A stretch of 64,000 nucleotides of DNA, taken from assembly GCA_010909165.1 (NCBI GenBank), contig MU008152.1, forward strand, positions 434,001 through 498,000, in the 5' to 3' direction. Positions 2,858 through 56,279 of the stretch are shown one piece after another; position 1 is the first letter of the stretch; each line of letters begins with the position of its first letter. A model generated the notes under the pieces. It was given only the letters and a program-made list of their open reading frames with translations, was not told where the DNA came from and ran no database searches. The stretch is from Anthoceros angustus (taxonomy: Eukaryota > Plantae > Anthocerotophyta). Made by a program: the position numbers and the translations under genes.

Positions 2858-3439
2858 TGCTCTTCACACTGTGAAGTGGTCAGTGGAAGATTACCACCCA
2901 AGCTTGTATCATATGGTTAGAACGTTCATTGATTAAGTCGAGTTACTACTATAGGCAGTTGCTAGTGCTAGCGCTGTGGCCGGGATGCGTATACCCAGCG
3001 AGGAATCTTGAGCCAGTGCCTCCCTGGGCTGCCGTTAGCAGATCACTCATTCTTTCTACAGTTTCGTTGTCCTGGTACAACAACTGAGGCAGCACCACTT
3101 CGTTCTTGGCCATTGGCAATAAACAAGTAGATGCATCATCTTCATCTAAAGCCTATCTATCCAGTCTACCCACCATCGTCACTTCAAAACCTTTCCATGG
3201 CGGCTTTGAACACTGAAACCTCATAATGGCAGCCCATCAAGAACAAGGGCGGTGGGAACTCTTATCATCCCTTAAACCCTTCAAGAAGTGTATGGATTCA
3301 CCTGCGAAACTTTGTTAGGTTGCACTGTTAAAGCTTGCGGCCAGGCACACTCTGATGCCTTCGATTTGGCTGTATTTCCTACTTTTCGCCTGGGGGCACG
3401 GCCCCCTGGCCTGGTGCCCCGTCGTGGGTTGTTCCCTTT

Positions 3440-3775: not shown

Positions 3776-5237
3776 ACCATGGTACAAGTTGTTAAGTACC
3801 TTGTCCATAACGGAAATCCGTCTCATAACGGAAATCCGTCCTTAGTGGACTTCAATAAAATTCTTCTTCTTCTTACGTGTTTGCAGCTAGAGTTTAGGAA
3901 AAGCGTCCGAGGGCAATCGGAGCGGCCGTTCAACGATATACCGCAGGCCTATCGAGAGACAAGCGTTGGTTGCGGCCGCTTGACAGGAACAACGAGAAAG
4001 GCACAGGCGTGCTTCCGTCGTTTTTCCCTCCCGCCGCCGCTTTGATGGATGTTCCAACCTCCGTGCTGGTCCTCCCTTCTTCCGAACTCCCTGTTCCGCA
4101 GACAAAGCCATCCGTTCCAGGCTTAGTCCATCCGTTGGAATACGATGCCAAACCATCAAACGGGCCACAGATTGCAGCTGAAAACCAGACAGCAAAAGGC
4201 TCTTCACAAGCCACAAAACAGAGGACACCGGGCTCAGAACAGCAAACCCCGCACCTGTGTTTCCCCTTCCGCTGGTGTGTCGACTCCATTAGACTCGCCA
4301 GCATACTGCTCCTGTGCCGGGGTCTGCTTGGCACACATCTACCAGCGTTAGCCAAGGGATAACACATTTGCATAGCGCACACTGGGGTCCATTTGCAACA
4401 AACAAAACATCACCAATGACTTCCTGTATGTGGACAAACTTCAAGTCTGGACTAGATGTTTTATTCAGTCCAGTCTACCAACAATTGTCAGTTCAAAACC
4501 TTTCCATGGCGGCTTTGAACACTGAAACCTCATGATGGCAGCCCTTCAAGAACAAGAGCGGTGGGAACTCTCATCATCCCTTACACTCTTCAAGAAGTGT
4601 ATTGGTCCCCTGCGAAATGTTGTTAGTTGCACTGTTAATGCTTGCGGCCAGGCACACTCTGATGCCTTCGATTTGGCTGTATTTCCTTCCTATCGCCTAG
4701 GGCCACGAAGTACGTCACCCAGAAAACATTACACAGGCTTATCGTGTTTGCAGACAGAGTTAAGGAAAGGCGTCCGAGAGCAATCGGAGCGGCCGTTCAA
4801 CGATATACTGCAGGCCTCCCGAGAGACAAGCGTTGGTTTTCGGCCGCTTGACAGGAACAGCGAGAAAGGCACAGGTGGGCAGCTTGGCAAGGAGCAGGGC
4901 AGAGGCCAGAGACGGAACAAGAAAACAGAAAAGGGAATGATTTTGAATAAAATGATCACCGTCAGGAGAGGGCCATACAGATGCGGCTGTGACAAGCAGA
5001 GCCAAGATGGAGATATAAGACACGATAACGATAGCCGGTGGATTGATTCTGGATTTACAAGGACTCCGGTGAGCCTGAGGAGTCGGAGGCTACAATGGTA
5101 ATCCACCGGGTGCGTGCCAGGAGCCAGGCTCCAGGCACGCTCTTTATTGTGCCCATGTCAAGCTACGCGCAATTAAGACATGGCTCCCCTCCCCTCCCCG
5201 TCCCTTCCCTTCCCTGCCCAGCTGCTGCTGGAGCACA

Positions 5238-5474
5238 TCACTTGCAGTCGCACTTGTTTGCATCGTCGTCGCACTTGCTGCAGTCGGGGTCGCCAGACAT
5301 GGCGGCCAGCACGTTCTCGCTGCAGCCCACAAATTTGAAAGCTCAAACAATCGTCAAGTCACTCGGCTCAGCTGCAAAATGGACGAAGCTACCAACAGAG
5401 ACGCGGCCTACGCATCCAAGCAAGCACACAAGAGGAGGAACTGGCCCAAGAACTCACAACACGACAGAGGCCAT
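5238..5474 (-). CDS. Two-exon micropeptide gene A, 32 aa: MASVVFENVLAAMSGDPDCSKCDDDANKCDCK
   Basis: ATG at 5474; exon 1 5474-5458; donor GTGAGT at 5457; acceptor CTGCAG ending 5320; exon 2 5319-5238 (TGA). 99 nt in frame. Same intron position and phase as paralog B. Confidence 0.8.
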
Positions 5475-7217
5475 TGCGAATTGGAAGAGGAGCTGAAAGG
5501 GCGCAGAGAGCGTGTCGGAAGCTTGGTGAGAGCGAGAGGACTGTGATGGCTTGCTCAAGTGGCTCGCTTCCAGCGCGCATTTCTAGCCCGGAGAAGGCGG
5601 GAATCGCCGCGGGCAGGCGAAACCCGGCGAAGGAATCTGAGACGGTGGCGAGTCCAAGTTGGCGATGGGGTGTGTCCCGGTCGTGGAGGTAGCTGGGGGC
5701 CTCGTGGGCGAAGGACGCCGGCACGGGCTCGGCCCCACTAGTACTCTGCCCCCGCACTGGTTGCGCCGCCCTCCAATCGGAGAATGCGCCATTTAGCCGT
5801 GCGATTGCTCGGGGGTCGCGCAAAGTTGCGTGCCCGACACACGCCGAACTGCGCAAGTCTTGTGTCCTGCTGGCCTGGCCAGTTCGTTGCAGCTTGCTCC
5901 TTCTTGAGCCATGGCCGCCGGCTACGGAACGTAGATTTGTTTGTATGTCGACGATTTCACATACAGCTTCAGGGGCCAGGGTTTCAGACCGGCTACTCTA
6001 TGATTGTTCTAGCTTTCACTCGAAGCATCGATAGCGGACTGAAAATCGCTCTTGTCGTGCGACTTCTAGGGCATACAGGCCCAGTGACGTGATGACCAGT
6101 GCTTTGGCTGACAATTCTTCTCATCCAGACCTTGCAGACATTATGTGCAGCTCTCAATATCTCAGGCTAAACACCCAAGAGTCTCAAAAGAGTCCTCCTC
6201 ACATCAAGGGCTGACTCACATCAGCCCCATCCATATCTAGCACACTTGTATCTTGAAATCTATGTACCTTGGGTTTTACAGAGGCTGTACTGGGAAATAT
6301 AATGCTTCCAGAACTTCATGTCATCATCCTGCTTTTGGTAAAACGGAGGCTTTCAGGAGCATCCTTGGCACCAGTGGCAAGCTTTGTAGTAGTTTGGACA
6401 TGCGTAACACCTCATGGACAACTTTCAATGGCGATTGGCTGCGAGTTAAAAGTTCCACGTACTCCATGGACGAAGATGCACAGACAAAGGTGTACCTTCA
6501 GTTGACCTGGGTCCCTCAGCTGGAAAGGGTGCAAAGCAGTGGCTTCCACGGCAAGATTTGCAAGACACTTGGAAACAAATGTATGCACGCCGTAGTTGAA
6601 AGTGTGTTGTGTACAACGCACTACATACTGCATACACTACTGATGAGGACAATGTGTCCATCACACCATCTGGAAGTGTGGGATTGGTGTAGTTAACCAA
6701 GTTGGAGGGCTGCTGACGGCACTGCACCAAGTGCTTCGTGCTGCTACTCGCCAAGGGCTTGCAAAGGCGATTCCGGGAAACTTCCCAGATTCCCAAGTGG
6801 TAGCGCACTGACGTTTGATGCTTGCAAGCGTCCAAGCGGACACGAAATGAATCGCTCGGCCCCACGTGAAGTGCGGGCCAGCTACTTGCTACGCACACAA
6901 GCCGGGCAAAGGCAGACATCGCATGACGTACGTGTCAGTGCTCAAATTTGGCAAGCTGGGATCAGGCTCCTGGCTGTGATGAGCACCTAGACTAGTGAAG
7001 GACTGCGGGTGTGGAATCCCAGCCTCTCAGGTGGTCCTGGAGCCAATCCCTGGCGTCGTGCACGCCGGCACAGATCGCCGCCTAGGACGTCGGTGGTGGT
7101 TGCAACTTGCAACTTGGGCCAAGCCATCTGGACGACAAATTCCAAATCAGCTAAGCCAAGTGTAGCTGCCGGGGCCCAGGGGCCAGAGCCCGACCGATTT
7201 CAGGCCTCGCTTTTGAG

Positions 7218-7223
7218 TATAAA
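7218..7223 (+). promoter_or_regulatory. TATA box of micropeptide gene B
   Basis: TATAAA about 115 bp upstream of the ATG at 7337, followed by a pyrimidine-rich leader. Confidence 0.55.
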
Positions 7224-7336
7224 GGAGCGGCAGCCACTCGCCTCTTCCTACACTTGCAATTTGTCTGCCCACCGCCTTTGCCTTCCCTGCTCCAATTTCG
7301 GGCTCGTCTCTTGCGTCTCAGCCCCGCAGCAGCCTC

Positions 7337-7562
7337 ATGGCCTCCGGAAACGTGTATGTGCTGCACCGCTCATGCCGAGAGTGACTGGGCTGGCAAATGG
7401 GTTTCCTCTCTTTTCTTGAGCATGGCGATTTGGAGAGAGTCCACTCAATTTTTGTGCTGGTGTGTTTGCAGCAACACGAGCTTTGTCCTGGCGGCGGTGG
7501 CCGGGGGTGACCCCGACTGCAGCAAGTGCAACGACGATGCCAACAAGTGCGACTGCAAGTGA
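7337..7562 (+). CDS. Two-exon micropeptide gene B, 35 aa: MASGNVNTSFVLAAVAGGDPDCSKCNDDANKCDCK
   Basis: ATG at 7337; exon 1 7337-7353; donor GTATGT at 7354; acceptor TTTGCAG ending 7471; exon 2 7472-7562 (TGA). 108 nt in frame. Confidence 0.8.
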
Positions 7563-8343
7563 AGTGCGCAAATGCGCACGCGTCACCATGGAGGCGGATT
7601 TCAACTGGATGAACATGCTCCTCAACGCTGGAAAATTCTGCCTCCAGCCTGCTGCTGAAGTGGAAAATTTGGAAGTATGCATGTGCAAATGGCCTGTGTG
7701 AATCTTTCGGAAAACATATCTTGCTGGAGTTGTCAATAGAGGCCTCTTCACTGTCGGGTAGCCTATTTGCAGGATCTCACAGCTCGCAACTTGGATTGCT
7801 TGATGAGAAGGGGATTGTTGTCTTCACATTTGTAACTCATCAGATATATCAAAAGCCAAAAGTCTTTCCGTTTGGCTACTTGTTTGGCTCGATTTGAAAC
7901 AACACAACTCTTCACCAATCCCTACTGGAAATCCTTTGCCATGACATTCCCCGTCCCAGAGGTTTTTTTAATCAACTGACTTGAACACACTTATTAAGAG
8001 CTGTCTGCCTAACTGCAGAACATAGTTACACGGCAACCCATATCCTCGATGTATAATTTTGGCATCCCTGCTTGCATAACACTGTTTTAATAGACGAGGG
8101 ACTTTCTGCATCATGCCCTGTTGGGAGCATCTTGATGTCATGGCATTCCATGTCACCTCCGGGGCCCAAATCGATCGATGTAACGGTCTTGACGCCATGG
8201 GTGCGAAGTCAGCTTGGAGCAGCAGACTGCCAACAAAGGCGATAGCGACCACGGGCAGTACTGGAGAGAACGTTCTGAGTAGGACAGTTACCAAGTTCGT
8301 GGCCCCTGAGGGTAAGTACGAAGCACAGCCAAATATGAAACTA

Positions 8344-8878
8344 CAGTCCACCCCCCCTAATTGGGACTGGTTCGGAGTGCCTTTAGAGGTCCCATTAAGG
8401 GAAGTGTCCCGATTGTATTTTTCCTATTTAAAAATAATAAAAATGTTATAAACTTAAAAAATCAAAAAATACCCCAAAAAAGAAAATTTAAATTTTGATT
8501 GATAGGTTTCACTAAAAATAACTTTTACCAGTTCTTTATATAGTTGTTTGAAAGCTAGCACTCTCTCTAAGCAGCATCAAAAAACCTCTATCTATCATAA
8601 AGGAAAAAGCTTAGTTTAAGAGTCTTCAATCACACCTAAAAGTCTATTGTGCTCTCAAATAATGGAATTTTTTTTCTTTTTTTAAATTTTTTTAGTAAAA
8701 AAATTAGAAATCCCATTTAGGGAGGTGAAACTAACATGAATGTATGTTTCAAAAGGTCCCAATTATCATTTAGGGAAAAGTCCCATTTATTACATTGTAA
8801 ACTAAAGGGAGTAGGATGGGAGGTCCCATTTAGAGAGGAATCCCATTTATAGAATTCCCAATTAGGGGGGGCCGACTG
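8344..8878. mobile_element. Tc1/mariner-type MITE (535 bp)
   Basis: TIRs CAGTCCACCCCCCCTAATTGGGA (left) and reverse complement of the right end CAGTCGGCCCCCCCTAATTGGGA. Flanked by TA on both sides (8342-8343, 8879-8880). AT-rich non-coding interior with repeated TCCCATT motifs. Confidence 0.88.
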
Positions 8879-9406
8879 TATCTTGCAACATAAGACTTTG
8901 CCTGGCTGCAGCTTTCCATGTCACAAGCATCAAGAGTGAAACTTAGAATTTGAAGGGGATACGAGACAGTACTTGAAGGGTTTAAGGGATCAAGAGCCCA
9001 CCACCCTTCTCCTTGCACGGCTGCAATCATGTAGTCTCGTTAAAGCTGCCATCATATGGACAGGTTTTGAACTGGAAAGTGTGGTCAGACTGGACTGGAC
9101 AAAAGATCAGTCCAGATTTGAACTTTATGGATTGGTAGGCTCTTGATCGGGATGATGCATTTAATTATTGCCAAGAGCCAAGAATGAAATAGTGCAGCCT
9201 CAGTTGTACCATGATAAATTTGAACTACAGAAAGAATGAGTAATTTGCTAAGGCAGCACAGGGAGGCACTGGCACTTCAAAAGGTAAAGGCCTCCCGGCC
9301 ACAGCGCTCGTAGCTACAGTAACTCGACTTGATAAATGTTCTACACATATGATACAAGCTTGGGTACGGTGACCTTACCACTGACAACTTCACAGGTTGA
9401 AGAGCA

Positions 9407-10756
9407 TCAGGCTGCAGCAAGGTGTGCCAAGAGGCCGACCATGCCGGCGTTGATGTAGGTGGTGGGCTCAGCCTGCCCGTAGTTGCTGCGGTCGTCGCCA
9501 TAAGCATCGGCCTCATCGGGTCCTCCCACAATGCCGCCTGTCAGCTGGTTGGGGTCAGAAGTGCTGGCCTGATAGTAGGAGAAGCTGTCAGAGTAGGCGA
9601 TCTCGGCAGGGTGAGTCTTGATGCACGGCACTGAAGCAGCAAGATGGTGAACCCGTTGGGGGAAGCTGGATCCAAATCCCACCATGTACGACATGCTCTG
9701 AGGATTGTCTCCCAGAATGTAGTCCACCTGTAGCAGGCTGGCAATAAAGGTCATGAGAAAGTGATCAGATTTTGGACTCAACAAGCAAAAACAGTGCAGA
9801 TTCCATCACTGCGCAGTGCAGCAGGAGCCCAATATCATCCAGACAGTACCTGGGTTTTGGCCTGCGCACAGAGCTGGGCGGGAGTGATGGCCGTGGTGCC
9901 ACAGGTGACTGTCTGCTGCGATGCATCCAGGTACTTGGCGTAGACGACGAGGAGAAAGGAAGATGCGATCAAGTACTGCAGATTGCTGCCTGCCGCGAAA
10001 TAGAAGAGTCCGCCTGCAGCACACGACACACAGGTTCACAATGCAATCAGCTTTGACATATATGATCTGAAAGCAGACTACTGAGCATTCATTCAATCTT
10101 CGACAGGGCCAGGAATGGGATGCAGATGAATGTAGAAGCATTACGGACCAGGAGTATACTTGGCTGCAGAGACGCCTGGCATGATGCCGCACACGAATGC
10201 ATCGGCTTGCCTGCACCCCATCGGCTTTGCCAGCAAGGAAGAATTGGGCAGCCAGGACCTGAGCGCCCGCGTATTTGTTATCCCAGCTGAGTGTGGGGGC
10301 GGAGGTGGTGGCGCCACCCAACTCCTCGCCGTTGTCCACAAGGCATTGCAGGTACTTGTGGTCCCTGGATGCCTTGTACAGCCAGGCTGTTCCCCATAGC
10401 AGCTCATCCTTGAAGCCCGAGTAGGAGCAGTAAAATGGGCACACTTGCGACTTGAGCGACCCGTCGCTGTATGCCGCTCTGCACCCCCACGCAAAAAAGA
10501 AGAGCTAAGTGGCGCTCGCCAAAAGCGTAGCAGAGTACTGGGCATCAGTGGCTTGGAACACAATGGAGGCAGCAGCCAGAGCGGCAGCCGTTTCCGCAGC
10601 AGCATCGGAGCCTGGGTTGGTGGCGTCAATCTTGTAGGCAGTGCGGTCAGTCTGCATGTCCTCGGGCCTTTGCCAGCACGTATGATCCTTGGTCGGATCC
10701 GCCACTTGAACGTACAGCTCGCTTGGCCCTGTGTGAGCTTTGAACAGATAGTCAGT
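9407..10756 (-). pseudogene. GH9 endoglucanase copy 2, 5'-truncated, inverted relative to copy 1
   Basis: Near-identical to 1555-2857 including introns. Retains [18 protein letters not shown] but has frameshifts near 10490 and 10215. Similarity ends at CACAAGACGCC (about 10756), where unrelated sequence begins. Confidence 0.9.
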
Positions 10757-10766
10757 CCCCCAACGG

Positions 10767-11195
10767 ATGGCGTCTTGTGGTAGTGGCCGCCGGGGAGGAA
10801 ACAATCGTGGTCGGGCTGGCCCATTGAAGCGGAGGGGGCCTCGGCGTGGAGGGAGGAAAACTCGTGCCAGACGTAACCGCCGTGATGAAGAGCCTCAACG
10901 ACCTGAAGGTATGGGCTATGGTTCGATGACCATGACTACAAGTACAAATTTCATGGTGTTGGCTCCGAAGGGAAATTATGAGGAAATGGACTTTTATGTC
11001 TTGAAATGTATGGAACCTGTACAGAACTTGACGGCAGCCTTCAAGGATACTAATTGGGGAGGGGAGGAGTTTGAAGCAGGCACTATTGTTGTGAAAGCCT
11101 TCTACTATGAGCAGGTTCCTGACAGCATTGGTATGTACACTTTCTTTGGGTGGCGGCACCCAATAGTCCCTAGGAGGACTGGTCTTGGCAACTAA
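10767..11195 (+). other. Unidentified ORF (Arg/Gly-rich start, then FYVLKC...D.WG..F.AG..VV...YY), probably TE-derived; second copy 12398-12838
   Basis: ORF track. It replaces the 5' part of GH9 copy 2. No family recognised with certainty. Confidence 0.3.
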
Positions 11196-12094
11196 GTTTT
11201 GATGTGGCCAATGGAGAAGCAAAATGAAAGCAGAACAATGTCGGCTCCACCCACATGAGAGGAAGTACATAGAGTGGTTGGCAAAGGTCGAACATGCAAA
11301 GGTGAAAAAGTTGAAGACCGTGATGATTGAATGTGTTTGTCGTGTGGATCATGTGAGGGGTCTCTGTCAATTTGTCATGCACCTGGTTGTGAGTGTTTAG
11401 AGGCCATGTGACCAGACCCTTTTTTGGACAAATGCGATGTGAGTTGGGGATAAACACTTTGAGGCTGGATCCCATGTTGTATCAATGGGTGTACGCCTTG
11501 TGACGAAATGCCCCATTTTGTGAGGGAACACCGAGTGCTGACCCCCCTATGTACTGAATTGTTCAATGTATATGACAGCTTAGAATGAACGAGTGCCCTT
11601 CAAATTGCGTTCGCGCGTGACAATGGGGTCCAACAAAGCCTGCTTAACCTAGCATCCTCCACCCACAAATGGCACAAACTGATGGCCCAGTGAAGAGTGA
11701 AAAAACTCGAAGGGCTCAAGCACAATCTGCCCATCACCACACCGTCTGGAATTGGACTAAACATATATAAGGATGGCACCCAGCTACATTCCTACTCTGC
11801 CTGTGCATTCAAACTGGTGCATTGTGAACAACACAAATTGCTAACCAAGTGAAGTATGCGCTAGCCTATGAACAAAGGAACATGTAAGGCTGCGAAGTTC
11901 CTTCCCATCGTGCTTGGATGGATTAGGCATCCACAACACTTCCACCATCGTCATCCTCGCCCTCTTGCACCATATTATTGTCGACACCTCGGATCTGCAG
12001 ATTAGGCTCCCCGCCGCGTTCTTCCCGACCATACGGCGTGGCGCGGCGGCGTCTCGCCCCGCAGCCCAATACCGCTTCCGCCTTTATGCGGTGG

Positions 12095-12407
12095 TCGCTG
12101 TATGCCGCTCTGCACCCCACGCAAAAGAAGAGCTAAGTGGCGCTCGCCAAAAGCGTAGCAGAGTACTGGGCATCAGTGGCTTGGAACACAATGGAGGCAG
12201 CAGCCAGAGCGGCAGCCGTTTCCGCAGCAGCAACATCGGAGCCTGGGTTGGTGGCGTCAATCTTGTAGGCAGTGCGGTCAGTCTGCATGTCCTCGGGCCT
12301 TTGCCAGCACGTATGATCCTTGGTCGGATCCGCCACTTGAACGTACAGCTCGCTTGGCCCTGTGTGAGCTTTGAACAGATAGTCAGTCCCCCAACGGATG
12401 GCGTCTT
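12095..12407 (-). pseudogene. GH9 fragment (copy 3)
   Basis: [51 protein letters not shown]...; part of the tandem duplication. Confidence 0.85.
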
Positions 12408-13639
12408 GTGGTAGTGGCCGCCGGGGAGGAAACAATCGTGGTCGGGCTGGCCCATTGAAGCGGAGGGGGCCTCGGCGTGGAGGGAGGAAAACTCGTGCCA
12501 GACGTAACCAGCCTGATGAAGAGCCTCAACGACCTGAAGGTATGGGCCATGGTTCGATGACCGTGACTACATGTACAAATTTCATGGTGTTGGCTCCGAA
12601 GGGAAATCATGAAGAAGTGGACTTTTATCTCTTGAAATGTATGGAACCTGTACAGAACTTGACGGCAGCCTTCAAGGATACTAATTGGGGAGGGGAGGAG
12701 TTTGAAGCAGGCACTATTGTTGTGAAAGCCTTCTACTATGAGCAGGTTCCCGACAGCATTGGTATGTACACTTTCGGATCGTGGTGGCGCCACCCAATAG
12801 TCCCTAGGAGGACACAGTCTTGGCAACTAAGTTTTTGATGTGGCCAATGGAGAAGCAAAATGAAAGCACAGAACAACTGTATCGGCTCCACCCACATGAG
12901 AGGAAGTACATAGAGTGGTTGGCAAAGGTCGAACATGCAAAGGTGAAAAAGTTGAAGACCGTGTGATGATTGAATGTGTTTGTCGTGTGGATCATGTGAG
13001 GGGTCTCTGTCAATTTGTCATGCACCTGGTTGTGAGTGTTTAGAGGCCATGTGACCAGACCCTTTTTTGGACAAATGCGATGTGAGTTGGGGATAAACAC
13101 TTTGAGGCTGGATCCCATGTTGTATCAATGGGTGTACGCCTTGTGACGAAATGCCCCATTTTGTGAGGGAACACCGAGTGCTGACCCCTATGTCTTGAAT
13201 TGTTCAATGTATATGATGACTTAGAATGAGCAGGTGCCCTTCAAATTGCGTTGCGTGACAATGGGGTCCAACAAAGCCTCGCTTAACCTAGCATCCTCCA
13301 CCCACAAATGGCACAAGCGATGGCCCAGTGAAGAGTGAAAAAACTCGAAGGGCTCAAGCACAATCTGCCCATCACCACACCGTCTGGAATTGGACTAAAC
13401 ATATATAAGGATGGCACCCAGCTACATTCCTACTCTGCCTGTGCATTCAAACTGGTGCATTGTGAACAACACAAATTGCTAACCAAGTGAAGTATGCGCT
13501 AGCCTATGAACAAAGGAACATGTAAGGCCGGCTGCGAAGTTCCTTCCTACTGTGCTTGGATGGATTAGGCATCCACAACACTTCCACCATCGTCATCCTC
13601 GCCCTCTTGCACCATATTATTGTCGACACCTCGGATGCA

Positions 13640-54030: not shown

Positions 54031-54535
54031 GCTGGCCGGTGGAGCAACCAACCAGGTGGCGTTATCTCCAACAGTGAGGAGATGCATGTGTTACATGCCG
54101 TATGTTATCGGCCCTGCTCATCGAGGAGGGCATGGAACGTGCTGCAACCTGCAATGCTAGGGTAAAGCTTGGAGGCTGGGCCTTCGCAGTCCTAGTACTG
54201 TCGGTCCAACGCCCCCTGCACCATACTGTTGAGGCTTGATGAAAGGCAGGCAATGTTGATGTCATCTTGAAGTCATGTCGGCTGGCTGGTGGAGCAACCA
54301 ACCAGGTGGCGTTATCTCCAACAGTGAGGAGATGCATGTGTTACATGCCGTATGTTATCGGCCCTGCTCATCGAGGAGGGCATGGAACGTGCTGCAACCT
54401 GCAATGCTAGGGTAAAGCTTGGAGGCTGGGCCTTCGCAGTCCTAGTACTGTCGGTCCAACGCCCCCTGCACCATACTGTTGAGGCTTGATGTGAAAGGCA
54501 GGCAATGTTGATGTCATCTTGAAGTCATGTCGGCT
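54031..54535. repeat. 250-bp tandem duplication overlapping the stop codon and 3' UTR of the GIL1-like gene
   Basis: 54031-54280 is almost identical to 54281-54535. Confidence 0.92.
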
Positions 54536-56279
54536 TTCGGCTGGCGCAGTAGACCTGACTCTTGACTAGCATTTTGTTCTTCACATGGAAACCAGGTGTC
54601 ACCATAAACTCTACTTGAACTACGGCAGAGAACTTGGAGAGGAGTGTTTTGGGGATCTTTTGAGTGTACATGGGCTCCATGTGCAGAGGGTCGAAGGATG
54701 CCAAAGGAAACACTTGGAACATGGTAACGGGAGGCTCGAAAGCAAAGGCTAACTTATGCAATCCCCAAACCGATAGAAGTGCTCGGGAACAAGACCGGGT
54801 GAGAGGGTCAGGCCAATCCTCGCTCGGGTAGCCTAATGTCGCTGCCAATAACTCAGTCTTCATCTCCATGAACTGGGGGACAGAATCGTCACTGGCTGGC
54901 TGTGTGTAAAAGCCTTCCCTGAAGAAAATCTGGCGTGACGAAGGCTGTGAAAAGATGGGCGCCTTCTTGTTCTCCAGGCCGAAAGACTCCTGCTCGAAGT
55001 TGCGAAACATGGCCACAGTTACGCAAGCTTTTACGTAGGAAGCTGCTGCCTCTGATCCAAATGGCCACGTTTCCCTTGCGTTGTTGTTGGCATCTTGCAA
55101 TCTCCAATACATTCTGTGGCCTTCCTCTTCAGTCACAGACGAACTCAGCTGATCGAAGAACTGGTGAATACGCATCTTGCAGCTCATCGCCTCCTCGGCA
55201 AAGATGCCAGGATCTGCAATGTAGCCTGGTGCAATGCATCTTCTGTTTGGACCAACATGATCCATTAAGGTCGGATTGCGTAAGGCCGGTTGTTTCCCTC
55301 TCTTGAATGTGACCTTCTGCAGATTTCCCTTTGGAAATCGCTGGCCACCTCTGTCGCCATACTCTGTGTTACGAGAATGTTGCAATGACATCCCGGTATC
55401 CCCTGATGGTAGCCTCAAAATTTTCAGCTTCTGTTTGGCCCGCTGCATCTCTTGTTCCTCACTATCCTGTCCAGAGTTCACATCTGTACGTGCACTCTCT
55501 TCTTCTTCCTCCTCCTCCTCCTCCTCCTCTTCTTCTTCTTTTAGGACTTGCGTTCCCTTGTCTTGAGCAGCATGTTCTTCAACTCGGAGTGCAGCCACCG
55601 GCTGCTTCGCCAAATGTGTCATGACACCATTCATCCGTTCATTCAGGAATACCACATGGTCATTGGATCCTTTTCCTTTTGTCTGAGAGACATTTCCCGG
55701 GTCATCTCGAGCCTGCACCAGCAGCTCCGCTCTGCTTGAAACATCACACTCACTTGCTCCGCCTGTCGAATGTGCCTTTAGCGAAACCTGCTGATCTCTC
55801 TCCCGATGCCTCTTCTTCTCCCCGGAAGGCCAAAATATGTCCTCTTCGGAATCCTCCTCTGCAGCTGGGCGAAGCACGAGATGATCCTCGATTCCACCGT
55901 TGTTAATAAAGATATGAAACTTCTCCCCGGTAGACCGCATTTCTTCTTCGAAATCCTCCTCAGCAACTGGGTGAAACACGGTACCATCTGCAATTGGCTG
56001 AAACACGGTGCGATTCTTGCGTCGCTTCCAGGCTTCCCGTGGCTTGCATGAGCTGAATTTTTCACTCCTGTCCTCTGCGATTTGGCCAACGTGATTTTTT
56101 GGCGGTCTCCATAGCTGTACTTGCATATTTTTCACCTTGGGTACCGCCTCGTGGATTCCTTCAGCCAAAAGCTCCTCCAGGTCCTTCTTTGCTTGGCACC
56201 GCCCATGGCAGCCCACAAACCAGCGCTTCGTACGGGCCATGTTACATGTAGAAATTATGTGTGAGATTAGGTTCATCAT
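54525..56279 (-). CDS. Intronless GIL1/IRKI-like protein (about 584 aa) with poly-Glu tract
   Basis: C-terminal FEQESF, MKTELL, SVWGLHKLAFAFEPPVTMFQV...FDPLHME, VEFMVTPGFHV...VKSQVYC is typical of the GIL1/IRKI C-terminal domain. The N-terminal half is low complexity. Confidence 0.75.
   Translation of the reverse strand: MMNLISHIISTCNMARTKRWFVGCHGRCQAKKDLEELLAEGIHEAVPKVKNMQVQLWRPPKNHVGQIAEDRSEKFSSCKPREAWKRRKNRTVFQPIADGTVFHPVAEEDFEEEMRSTGEKFHIFINNGGIEDHLVLRPAAEEDSEEDIFWPSGEKKRHRERDQQVSLKAHSTGGASECDVSSRAELLVQARDDPGNVSQTKGKGSNDHVVFLNERMNGVMTHLAKQPVAALRVEEHAAQDKGTQVLKEEEEEEEEEEEEEESARTDVNSGQDSEEQEMQRAKQKLKILRLPSGDTGMSLQHSRNTEYGDRGGQRFPKGNLQKVTFKRGKQPALRNPTLMDHVGPNRRCIAPGYIADPGIFAEEAMSCKMRIHQFFDQLSSSVTEEEGHRMYWRLQDANNNARETWPFGSEAAASYVKACVTVAMFRNFEQESFGLENKKAPIFSQPSSRQIFFREGFYTQPASDDSVPQFMEMKTELLAATLGYPSEDWPDPLTRSCSRALLSVWGLHKLAFAFEPPVTMFQVFPLASFDPLHMEPMYTQKIPKTLLSKFSAVVQVEFMVTPGFHVKNKMLVKSQVYCASRKPT

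Follow-up and report, generated by a model that had tools for sequence, protein, structure and literature searches.

Two divergent spliced micropeptide genes of Anthoceros angustus with a conserved four-cysteine tail and a possible role in metal binding

Metallothioneins bind metal through CxxC and CxC motifs, as listed in a review of metal biology in streptophytes (PMC8070800). As of 2021, metallothionein sequences of non-vascular plants were known only from three mosses and Marchantia, and there was no information on metal responses in hornworts (PMC8070800). Here, we analysed a stretch of 64,000 nucleotides (nt) of the hornwort Anthoceros angustus (contig MU008152.1, positions 434,001 to 498,000 of the forward strand; hereafter the window), which carries two divergent genes, A on the minus strand and B on the plus strand, whose short products end in one CxxC and one CxC motif. 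An original prediction, made from the letters of the window, had proposed both genes. The results showed that A and B are two real spliced genes, each with its own promoter, and we hold this gene-level conclusion with high confidence.

Direct reading and scripted splicing gave gene A a coding sequence of 5474-5458 joined to 5319-5238 on the minus strand (99 nt spliced, 32 amino acids, ATG at 5474-5472). Gene B has a coding sequence of 7337-7353 joined to 7472-7562 on the plus strand (108 nt spliced, 35 amino acids, ATG at 7337-7339). Five small public runs each shared 12-19% of the sampled words of 5100-7750, and four of them (X1, X2, X3, and X5), from four studies, were aligned to the window. 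Their run type, "RNA?", is a guessed label, and the evidence consists of assembled contigs rather than reads, so transcript ends can be placed only roughly and expression cannot be read from depth. Contigs in X1, X3, and X5 joined 5319 to 5458 and skipped 138 nt bounded by CT..AC on the plus strand, which is GT..AG for gene A, while contigs in X1, X2, X3, and X5 joined 7353 to 7472 and skipped 118 nt bounded by GT..AG. All contigs of X1 to X3 were at least 99% identical to the window, and no contig of the four runs covered the spacer between the genes at about 5634-7235. Contigs that lack the introns exactly at GT..AG, together with an uncovered spacer, indicate that the sequences derive from mRNA and not from genomic DNA.

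The mRNA of gene A extends from about 5546 to about 4924 (485-nt contig) and that of gene B from about 7260 to about 7858, each being about 480 nt long after splicing. At the 5' boundary of gene A, the contigs X1 record 1 and X3 record 9 end at 5546 and 5545, respectively; at that of gene B, X1 record 2 and X3 record 10 begin at 7260 and X2 record 7 begins at 7274. We rejected the possibility that these are terminal exons of a larger gene, because the contigs start about 75 nt 5' of the ATG, just past the TATA box, with nothing joined upstream. A transposon fragment was likewise rejected, since only two copies occur in the 64 kb and their flanks are unique. Contig depth in X5 was very high (tens of thousands or more), which is a hint of abundance only, as depth does not measure expression.

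We then compared the two genes with each other. Their last 18 codons differ in 3 of 54 bases (GGC/GGT, GCA/GCC, and GAC/AAC). A repeat finder returned a single inverted match of 62 nt between them (5233-5294 and 7506-7567, 94%), pairwise alignment of 520 nt around each gene was convincing over the tail only, and the loci did not align outside the 62-nt block, in introns or in flanks. A 21-mer of the tail block occurs exactly twice in the window, and no match was found in 100 dinucleotide-preserving shuffles even with three mismatches allowed. The original prediction had described two spliced divergent genes with 17-nt first segments and phase-2 introns, and tails that differ by two synonymous changes and one D/N swap between introns and flanks that cannot be aligned. 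Its coordinates proved right to the base and agree with the RNA contigs, the alignment bears out its account of the tails, and the junction check it had proposed found both joins (5319-5458 and 7353-7472) in contigs of public runs.

In each spliced mRNA, the proposed open reading frame (ORF) opens at the first AUG, at position 73 in A and position 78 in B. Other ORFs reach at most 39 amino acids in mRNA A and 54 amino acids in mRNA B, and none of them is conserved between the two. As neither mRNA holds a longer conserved ORF, there is no main ORF that the small ORF could precede as an upstream ORF.

Further members of the family were found both in the transcripts and in protein collections. 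There is at least a third expressed paralogue, whose transcript was present in X1 and X3 (at loose contig ends) with its own 3' untranslated region (UTR) and which reads in frame ..M-S-S-V-L-A-A-G-A-G immediately before DPDC.. A close variant of A that keeps the exon junction was present in X5. A profile built from the two exon-2 translations was searched with HMMER against 1.84 billion representative proteins and gave three matches, two of which, P0003 (32 amino acids) and P0002 (65 amino acids), are relatives that finish in the same tail as A and B. P0002 carries one extra Leu, giving C-x2-C-x7-C-x-C. The third match, P0001 (171 amino acids), was rejected as a relative because it has no Cys and matches by chance the LAA..GGDP part of the profile through its LLAAYTGGDPxVRS repeats. 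P0001 is an odd repeat protein of E-L-L-A-A-Y-T-G-G-D-P-x-V-R-S units that is probably unrelated to the family.

Both relatives come from genomic contigs of one run, SRR33208241. One of their loci adjoins a Golgin_A5 gene and the other a RETICULATA-like gene, indicating that the sample derives from a plant-like genome. Both proteins are bacterial-style ORF calls that read into an intron from an in-frame intronic ATG (L001 2621-3099, L002 2750-3198), and a 17-nt exon located 341-377 nt upstream appears to be where the real genes begin. In L001, ATGGCC plus 11 nt at 2621-2637 is followed by a GTAAGT donor and an in-phase acceptor 377 nt downstream, giving 33 amino acids; in L002, ATGGCC plus 11 nt at 2750-2766 is followed by a GTAAGC donor and a 341-nt intron, giving 35 amino acids. 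All four genomic copies have a first coding segment of 17 nt, an intron in phase 2, and the same stop position. All four genes also have a TATA-like box 111-127 nt 5' of the ATG, beyond which no k-mer was common to the four promoters. The 6-kb loci of L001 and L002 did not align with the window apart from the coding block. Exon 1 of B and that of L002 agree at 15 of 17 bases, and A and L001 both have AMSG before DPDC, which hints at two old paralogue lineages (B/L002 and A/L001), with 18 codons being too few for proof. L001 and L002 may be orthologues from another species; that they are additional paralogues in a close relative is less likely. Taken together, the family comprises at least three expressed members here and two loci in the SRR33208241 sample, and it is defined by the 17-nt ATGGCC segment, the phase-2 intron, and an 18-residue acidic tail, [GE]-DPDCSKC-[DN]-DD-[AD]-[NS]-K-(L)-C-[DN]-CK.

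The four genomic copies allowed selection on the tail to be assessed. Over the 18 codons, the ratio of nonsynonymous to synonymous differences per site (pN/pS, Nei-Gojobori) was 0.09-0.21 in the proposed frame across all six pairs, as against 0.8-2.4 in frame +1 and stops in frame +2, with small counts (about 8 synonymous sites) behind each ratio but with all lines of evidence agreeing. In the L002 tail, the Ser codon changed from AGC to TCC and serine was retained. Judged from these codon comparisons, the peptide frame is under purifying selection, as the original prediction had claimed from two copies and as now holds for four. This argument stands whether L001 and L002 are orthologues or paralogues.

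These comparisons also bear on the possibility that the transcripts are non-coding, the shared 57-62 nt being an RNA or DNA element or a product of gene conversion in a palindrome, with an incidental ORF. The pair lies roughly symmetrically inside a spacer of about 6.4 kb between the arms of an inverted repeat (about 1556-2930 on the plus strand versus 9330-10780 on the minus strand, 96-100% identical), where conversion from arm to arm is plausible, and so few coding bases separate A from B. However, the unlinked copies agree in frame, stop, 17-nt ATG exon, and intron phase, most of their changes are synonymous, and conversion cannot account for the conservation in L001 and L002. Moreover, an Rfam scan of 4800-8000 gave no real match, and the tail block folded no better than shuffles (z = 1.08 and 0.32). 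We consider a non-coding origin highly improbable.

The four peptides were then inspected for features of known families. Both the sequence and the length of the N-terminal part (13-17 residues) vary, whereas 14 positions of the last 18-19 are invariant, among them all four Cys, DPD, SK, DD, and K. Each peptide has a single C-x2-C-x6(7)-C-x-C cluster at the C-terminus, consisting of one CxxC and one CxC motif that are invariant in all copies, and an N-terminal half free of Cys in all four. Hydrophobic runs near the N-terminus are 4-7 residues long (VLAAM, FVLAAVA, MAVAM, and LVLA), lack conservation, and are broken by E, N, or K. When the four N-termini were inspected, the signal peptide that characterises secreted cysteine-rich peptides was not seen.

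Processed peptides typically combine a variable N-terminus with an invariant C-terminal core, as is the case here, and the products might be precursors from which the N-terminal 13-17 residues are removed so that a peptide of 17-18 residues with two disulfides serves as an extracellular signal or antimicrobial. The even Cys count and the small residues before DPD (G, or SG/GG) in three of the four copies would fit such processing. The hydrophobic runs, short and interrupted as they are by inspection, do not amount to a conserved property, and a chain of 32-35 amino acids would be released before a signal could engage the signal recognition particle. In addition, the net charge, near -5, differs from that of known plant antimicrobial cysteine-rich peptides, and Pfam gave no match to a secreted cysteine-rich peptide family. 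We rate a secreted precursor as quite unlikely.

Another possibility concerns the C-terminus, where the CDCK end might be prenylated or palmitoylated, yielding a membrane-tethered peptide or an exported lipopeptide like fungal a-factor. The peptides resemble precursors of the a-factor type in their length (about 35 amino acids), in having no signal peptide, and in the Cys that stands four residues from the C-terminus. However, C-D-C-K makes a poor CaaX box, since a1 is acidic and X is Lys, and the upstream CxxC, which is equally conserved, would be left unexplained. We consider a lipid anchor very improbable.

We searched for both peptides in databases and in the literature. A hmmscan against Pfam-A with E up to 10 returned no family for either peptide, metallothionein and the known cysteine-rich peptide families included. 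Among PDB sequences, nothing significant was found with a single peptide and nothing with the four-sequence profile, and the exon-2 translation had no usable match in the ESM Atlas. A word-index protein search with a 40-amino-acid query, 10 residues of which derive from the intron, gave no candidate; this blank is weak, because the search also missed P0002, which belongs to the collection, is of suitable length, and has nine 5-residue words in common with the query. Degenerate-pattern scans of JGI metagenome contigs gave 0 matches, four tail strings did not occur in a literal search of 8.4 million papers, and literature searches on hornwort small peptides and hornwort metallothioneins found nothing relevant. 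The family is apparently undescribed, as far as the databases and literature searched show.

AlphaFold2 run on the four-sequence alignment gave a predicted local distance difference test score (pLDDT) of 58.7 and no secondary structure. The second pair of the cluster is CxC, 6-7 residues from the first, and with no confident fold at that pLDDT the peptides do not qualify as a zinc ribbon or knuckle. As for metallothioneins, the CxC and CxxC motifs are present, while neither a profile match nor two or more Cys-rich domains with a Cys-free linker was found. The genes are transcribed, their ORF opens at the first AUG, and it carries the coding selection described above, as expected of small-ORF peptides. 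We rated the family as small non-secreted Cys-motif peptides. The original prediction had suggested a metal-binding or redox peptide, or a leader plus core precursor, as candidate functions. It had also stated that the peptides do not have Cys clusters at both ends as canonical plant metallothioneins do, carry no convincing conserved signal peptide, and match no described family. Each of these three statements on the peptides held up, the second by inspection and the third across Pfam, PDB sequences, the ESM Atlas, the protein profile search, and the literature.

Our best explanation of the whole, real micropeptide genes whose products bind metal, is one that we favour with somewhat less than even confidence. 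Its preferred mechanism, a minimal metallothionein-like metal or thiol buffer, is put forward more tentatively still. The peptide would stay in the cytosol, as suggested by the lack of a conserved signal peptide, and the Met-Ala start suggests that the initiator Met would most likely be lost and the N-terminus then acetylated. Four thiols within 13-14 residues (CxxC, 6-7 residues, CxC) may constitute a single tetrathiolate site that binds Zn(II), Cd(II), or Cu(I), a site suggested by the use of both motifs for metal binding in metallothioneins (PMC8070800). Alternatively, a small metal cluster might be shared on dimerisation. The function of the peptide would then be that of a minimal, metallothionein-like buffer or chaperone for metal, or that of a thiol scavenger, and the variable N-terminal half may serve as a spacer. 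The predicted lack of an autonomous fold is what would be expected of an apo metal peptide, and the very high contig depth in X5 is as usual for metallothionein mRNAs, with depth being no expression measure; both lend indirect support, as does the invariance of all four Cys. It is possible, and rather doubtful, that the family represents a "micro-metallothionein" of the hornwort lineage, present in the cytosol in abundance, with 32-35 amino acids and a single Cys4 cluster, and encoded by some of the smallest spliced plant coding sequences known (99-108 nt, with 17 nt in the first coding segment). It would then buffer metal and thiols in a plant group for which PMC8070800 lists no metallothionein sequences.

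Several points weigh against a metal-thiolate peptide. Support for the peptide itself lies at the transcript and sequence level only, and no Pfam metallothionein family matched at E up to 10. The composition, with four Cys (about 12%), a single Phe in all members but one of the four, and a net charge near -5, is atypical for metallothioneins. The non-Cys residues of the tail (DPD, SK, DD, and K) are strongly conserved, a pattern more suggestive of a specific partner or fold than of a generic thiolate cluster, and the low-confidence AlphaFold2 model would fit disorder equally well. The SRR33208241 sample may not represent another species, and the family may accordingly be of narrow taxonomic breadth.

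The conserved tail residues and the predicted lack of structure could also be read as signs of a redox or partner-binding micropeptide, namely a conditionally disordered thiol switch, with two disulfides when oxidised, or a docking motif controlling a specific protein, in the manner of CP12 and other small regulatory microproteins rather than of a metal store. D14, P15, D16, S18, K19, D22, D23, and K26 are invariant and as conserved as the Cys, which would fit a specific interface; no autonomous fold was predicted, and no metallothionein similarity was found in Pfam. However, such a peptide is without a known partner, there is no similarity to CP12 or any known microprotein family in Pfam or PDB sequences, and the CxC geometry is poor for an intramolecular disulfide. 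We regard this explanation as unlikely. The metal or thiol buffer remains the mechanism that we prefer.

The coordinates of both genes are collected in Table 1.

Table 1. Features of genes A and B and of the spacer between them (positions within the window)
Feature	Position	Strand	Details
Gene A TATA-like box	5579-5585	-	TAGAAAT; 111 nt 5' of ATG, about 39 nt 5' of contig 5' end
Gene A exon 1	5458-5546	-	72-nt 5' UTR without upstream AUG, plus 17-nt coding segment (5474-5458)
Gene A intron	5320-5457	-	138 nt, GTGAGT..CAG, phase 2; junction in X1, X3, X5
Gene A second coding segment	5238-5319	-	includes TGA stop
Gene A conserved tail block	5238-5294	-	G-DPDCSKC-D-DDANKCDCK plus stop
Gene A 3' UTR	4924-5237	-	end approximate; contig X1 record 1 (485 nt) extends 176 nt past 5100
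Spacer between divergent transcription units	5547-7259		about 1.7 kb; contig cover absent at about 5634-7235
Gene B TATA box	7218-7223	+	TATAAA; 119 nt 5' of ATG, about 42 nt 5' of contig 5' end
Gene B exon 1	7260-7353	+	77-nt 5' UTR without upstream AUG, plus 17-nt coding segment (7337-7353)
Gene B intron	7354-7471	+	118 nt, GTATGT..CAG, phase 2; junction in X1, X2, X3, X5
Gene B second coding segment	7472-7562	+	includes TGA stop
Gene B conserved tail block	7506-7562	+	G-DPDCSKC-N-DDANKCDCK plus stop
Gene B 3' UTR	7563-7858	+	end approximate; X1 record 5 and X2 record 7; contigs extend about 108 nt past 7750

The surroundings of the pair were also examined. Two ORFs of the spacer region, 5392-5856 and 6449-6919, had no Pfam match. 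The arms of the inverted repeat carry exon pieces of Glyco_hydro_9 (PF00759, GH9), and the repeat may be a recent palindromic duplication, a result of gene conversion, or an assembly effect. A third partial copy of the Glyco_hydro_9 repeat lies at 12126-12410, with a tandem unit of about 1.63 kb (10692 to 12323). The order of the elements (GH9 forward, A reverse; B forward, GH9 reverse) suggests an old inverted duplication whose outer arms were later homogenised or duplicated again. A short element resembling a miniature inverted-repeat transposable element flanks the pair on both sides, with degenerate (71-88%) inverted matches of 609-1116, 3035-3308, and 4455-4507 to 8050-9317. Elsewhere in the window, an ORF of 584 amino acids on the minus strand (54528-56279) has a sub-threshold match to the GIL1/IRKI C-terminal domain (E 3.4e-4, 21 bits versus a cut-off of 27).

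These findings matter for annotation as well as for metal biology. With a coding sequence of about 100 nt that is split after 17 nt, A and B are real spliced coding genes that are invisible to ORF scans and to standard annotation; their mRNAs nevertheless appear abundant and their peptide is, on the codon evidence, under selection. In genomic DNA, the exon-2 frame of gene B is open for 102 codons through the intron and the 5' UTR (7254-7562, plus strand), and an ORF-based caller would consequently report a spurious protein of 102 or 46 amino acids. The shared architecture of TATA box, 5' UTR of about 75 nt, 17-nt exon, and phase-2 intron provides a search template for other genomes. The literature searched describes no candidate for metal or thiol homeostasis in this seedless lineage, and the family now supplies a concrete one. 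Moreover, the two compact divergent promoters are apparently strong and could become tools for hornwort transformation if high expression proves true.

Among the closest known systems are plant metallothioneins (types 1-4; type 1 in bryophytes), with which the peptides have in common small size, the absence of a signal peptide, CxxC and CxC motifs, a C-x-C-K end, and apparently abundant mRNA. Plant metallothioneins, however, have two or three clusters with 10-17 Cys, whereas A and B have one cluster of 4 Cys, and the strongly acidic tail, the presence of Phe, the lack of a Pfam metallothionein match, and the first coding segment of 17 nt set the hornwort peptides further apart. Fungal copper metallothioneins of the Neurospora or Agaricus type, which have about 25 amino acids and 7 Cys in a Gly/Ser-rich context, are likewise single short thiolate-cluster peptides of comparable length, but no sequence similarity to A or B was detected. 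The DVL/RTFL and moss small-ORF peptides are also shorter than 50 amino acids, lack a signal peptide, combine a conserved C-terminal part with a variable N-terminus, and are missed by annotation; in contrast to A and B, they are mostly intronless and are not acidic Cys4 peptides, and Pfam gave no sequence match between them. CP12-type thiol-switch proteins resemble the peptides in being small and acidic, with Cys pairs and no stable predicted fold, but CP12 has about 80 amino acids, is targeted to plastids, and carries Cys pairs 7-8 residues apart and an AWD_VEEL core that is absent from A and B.

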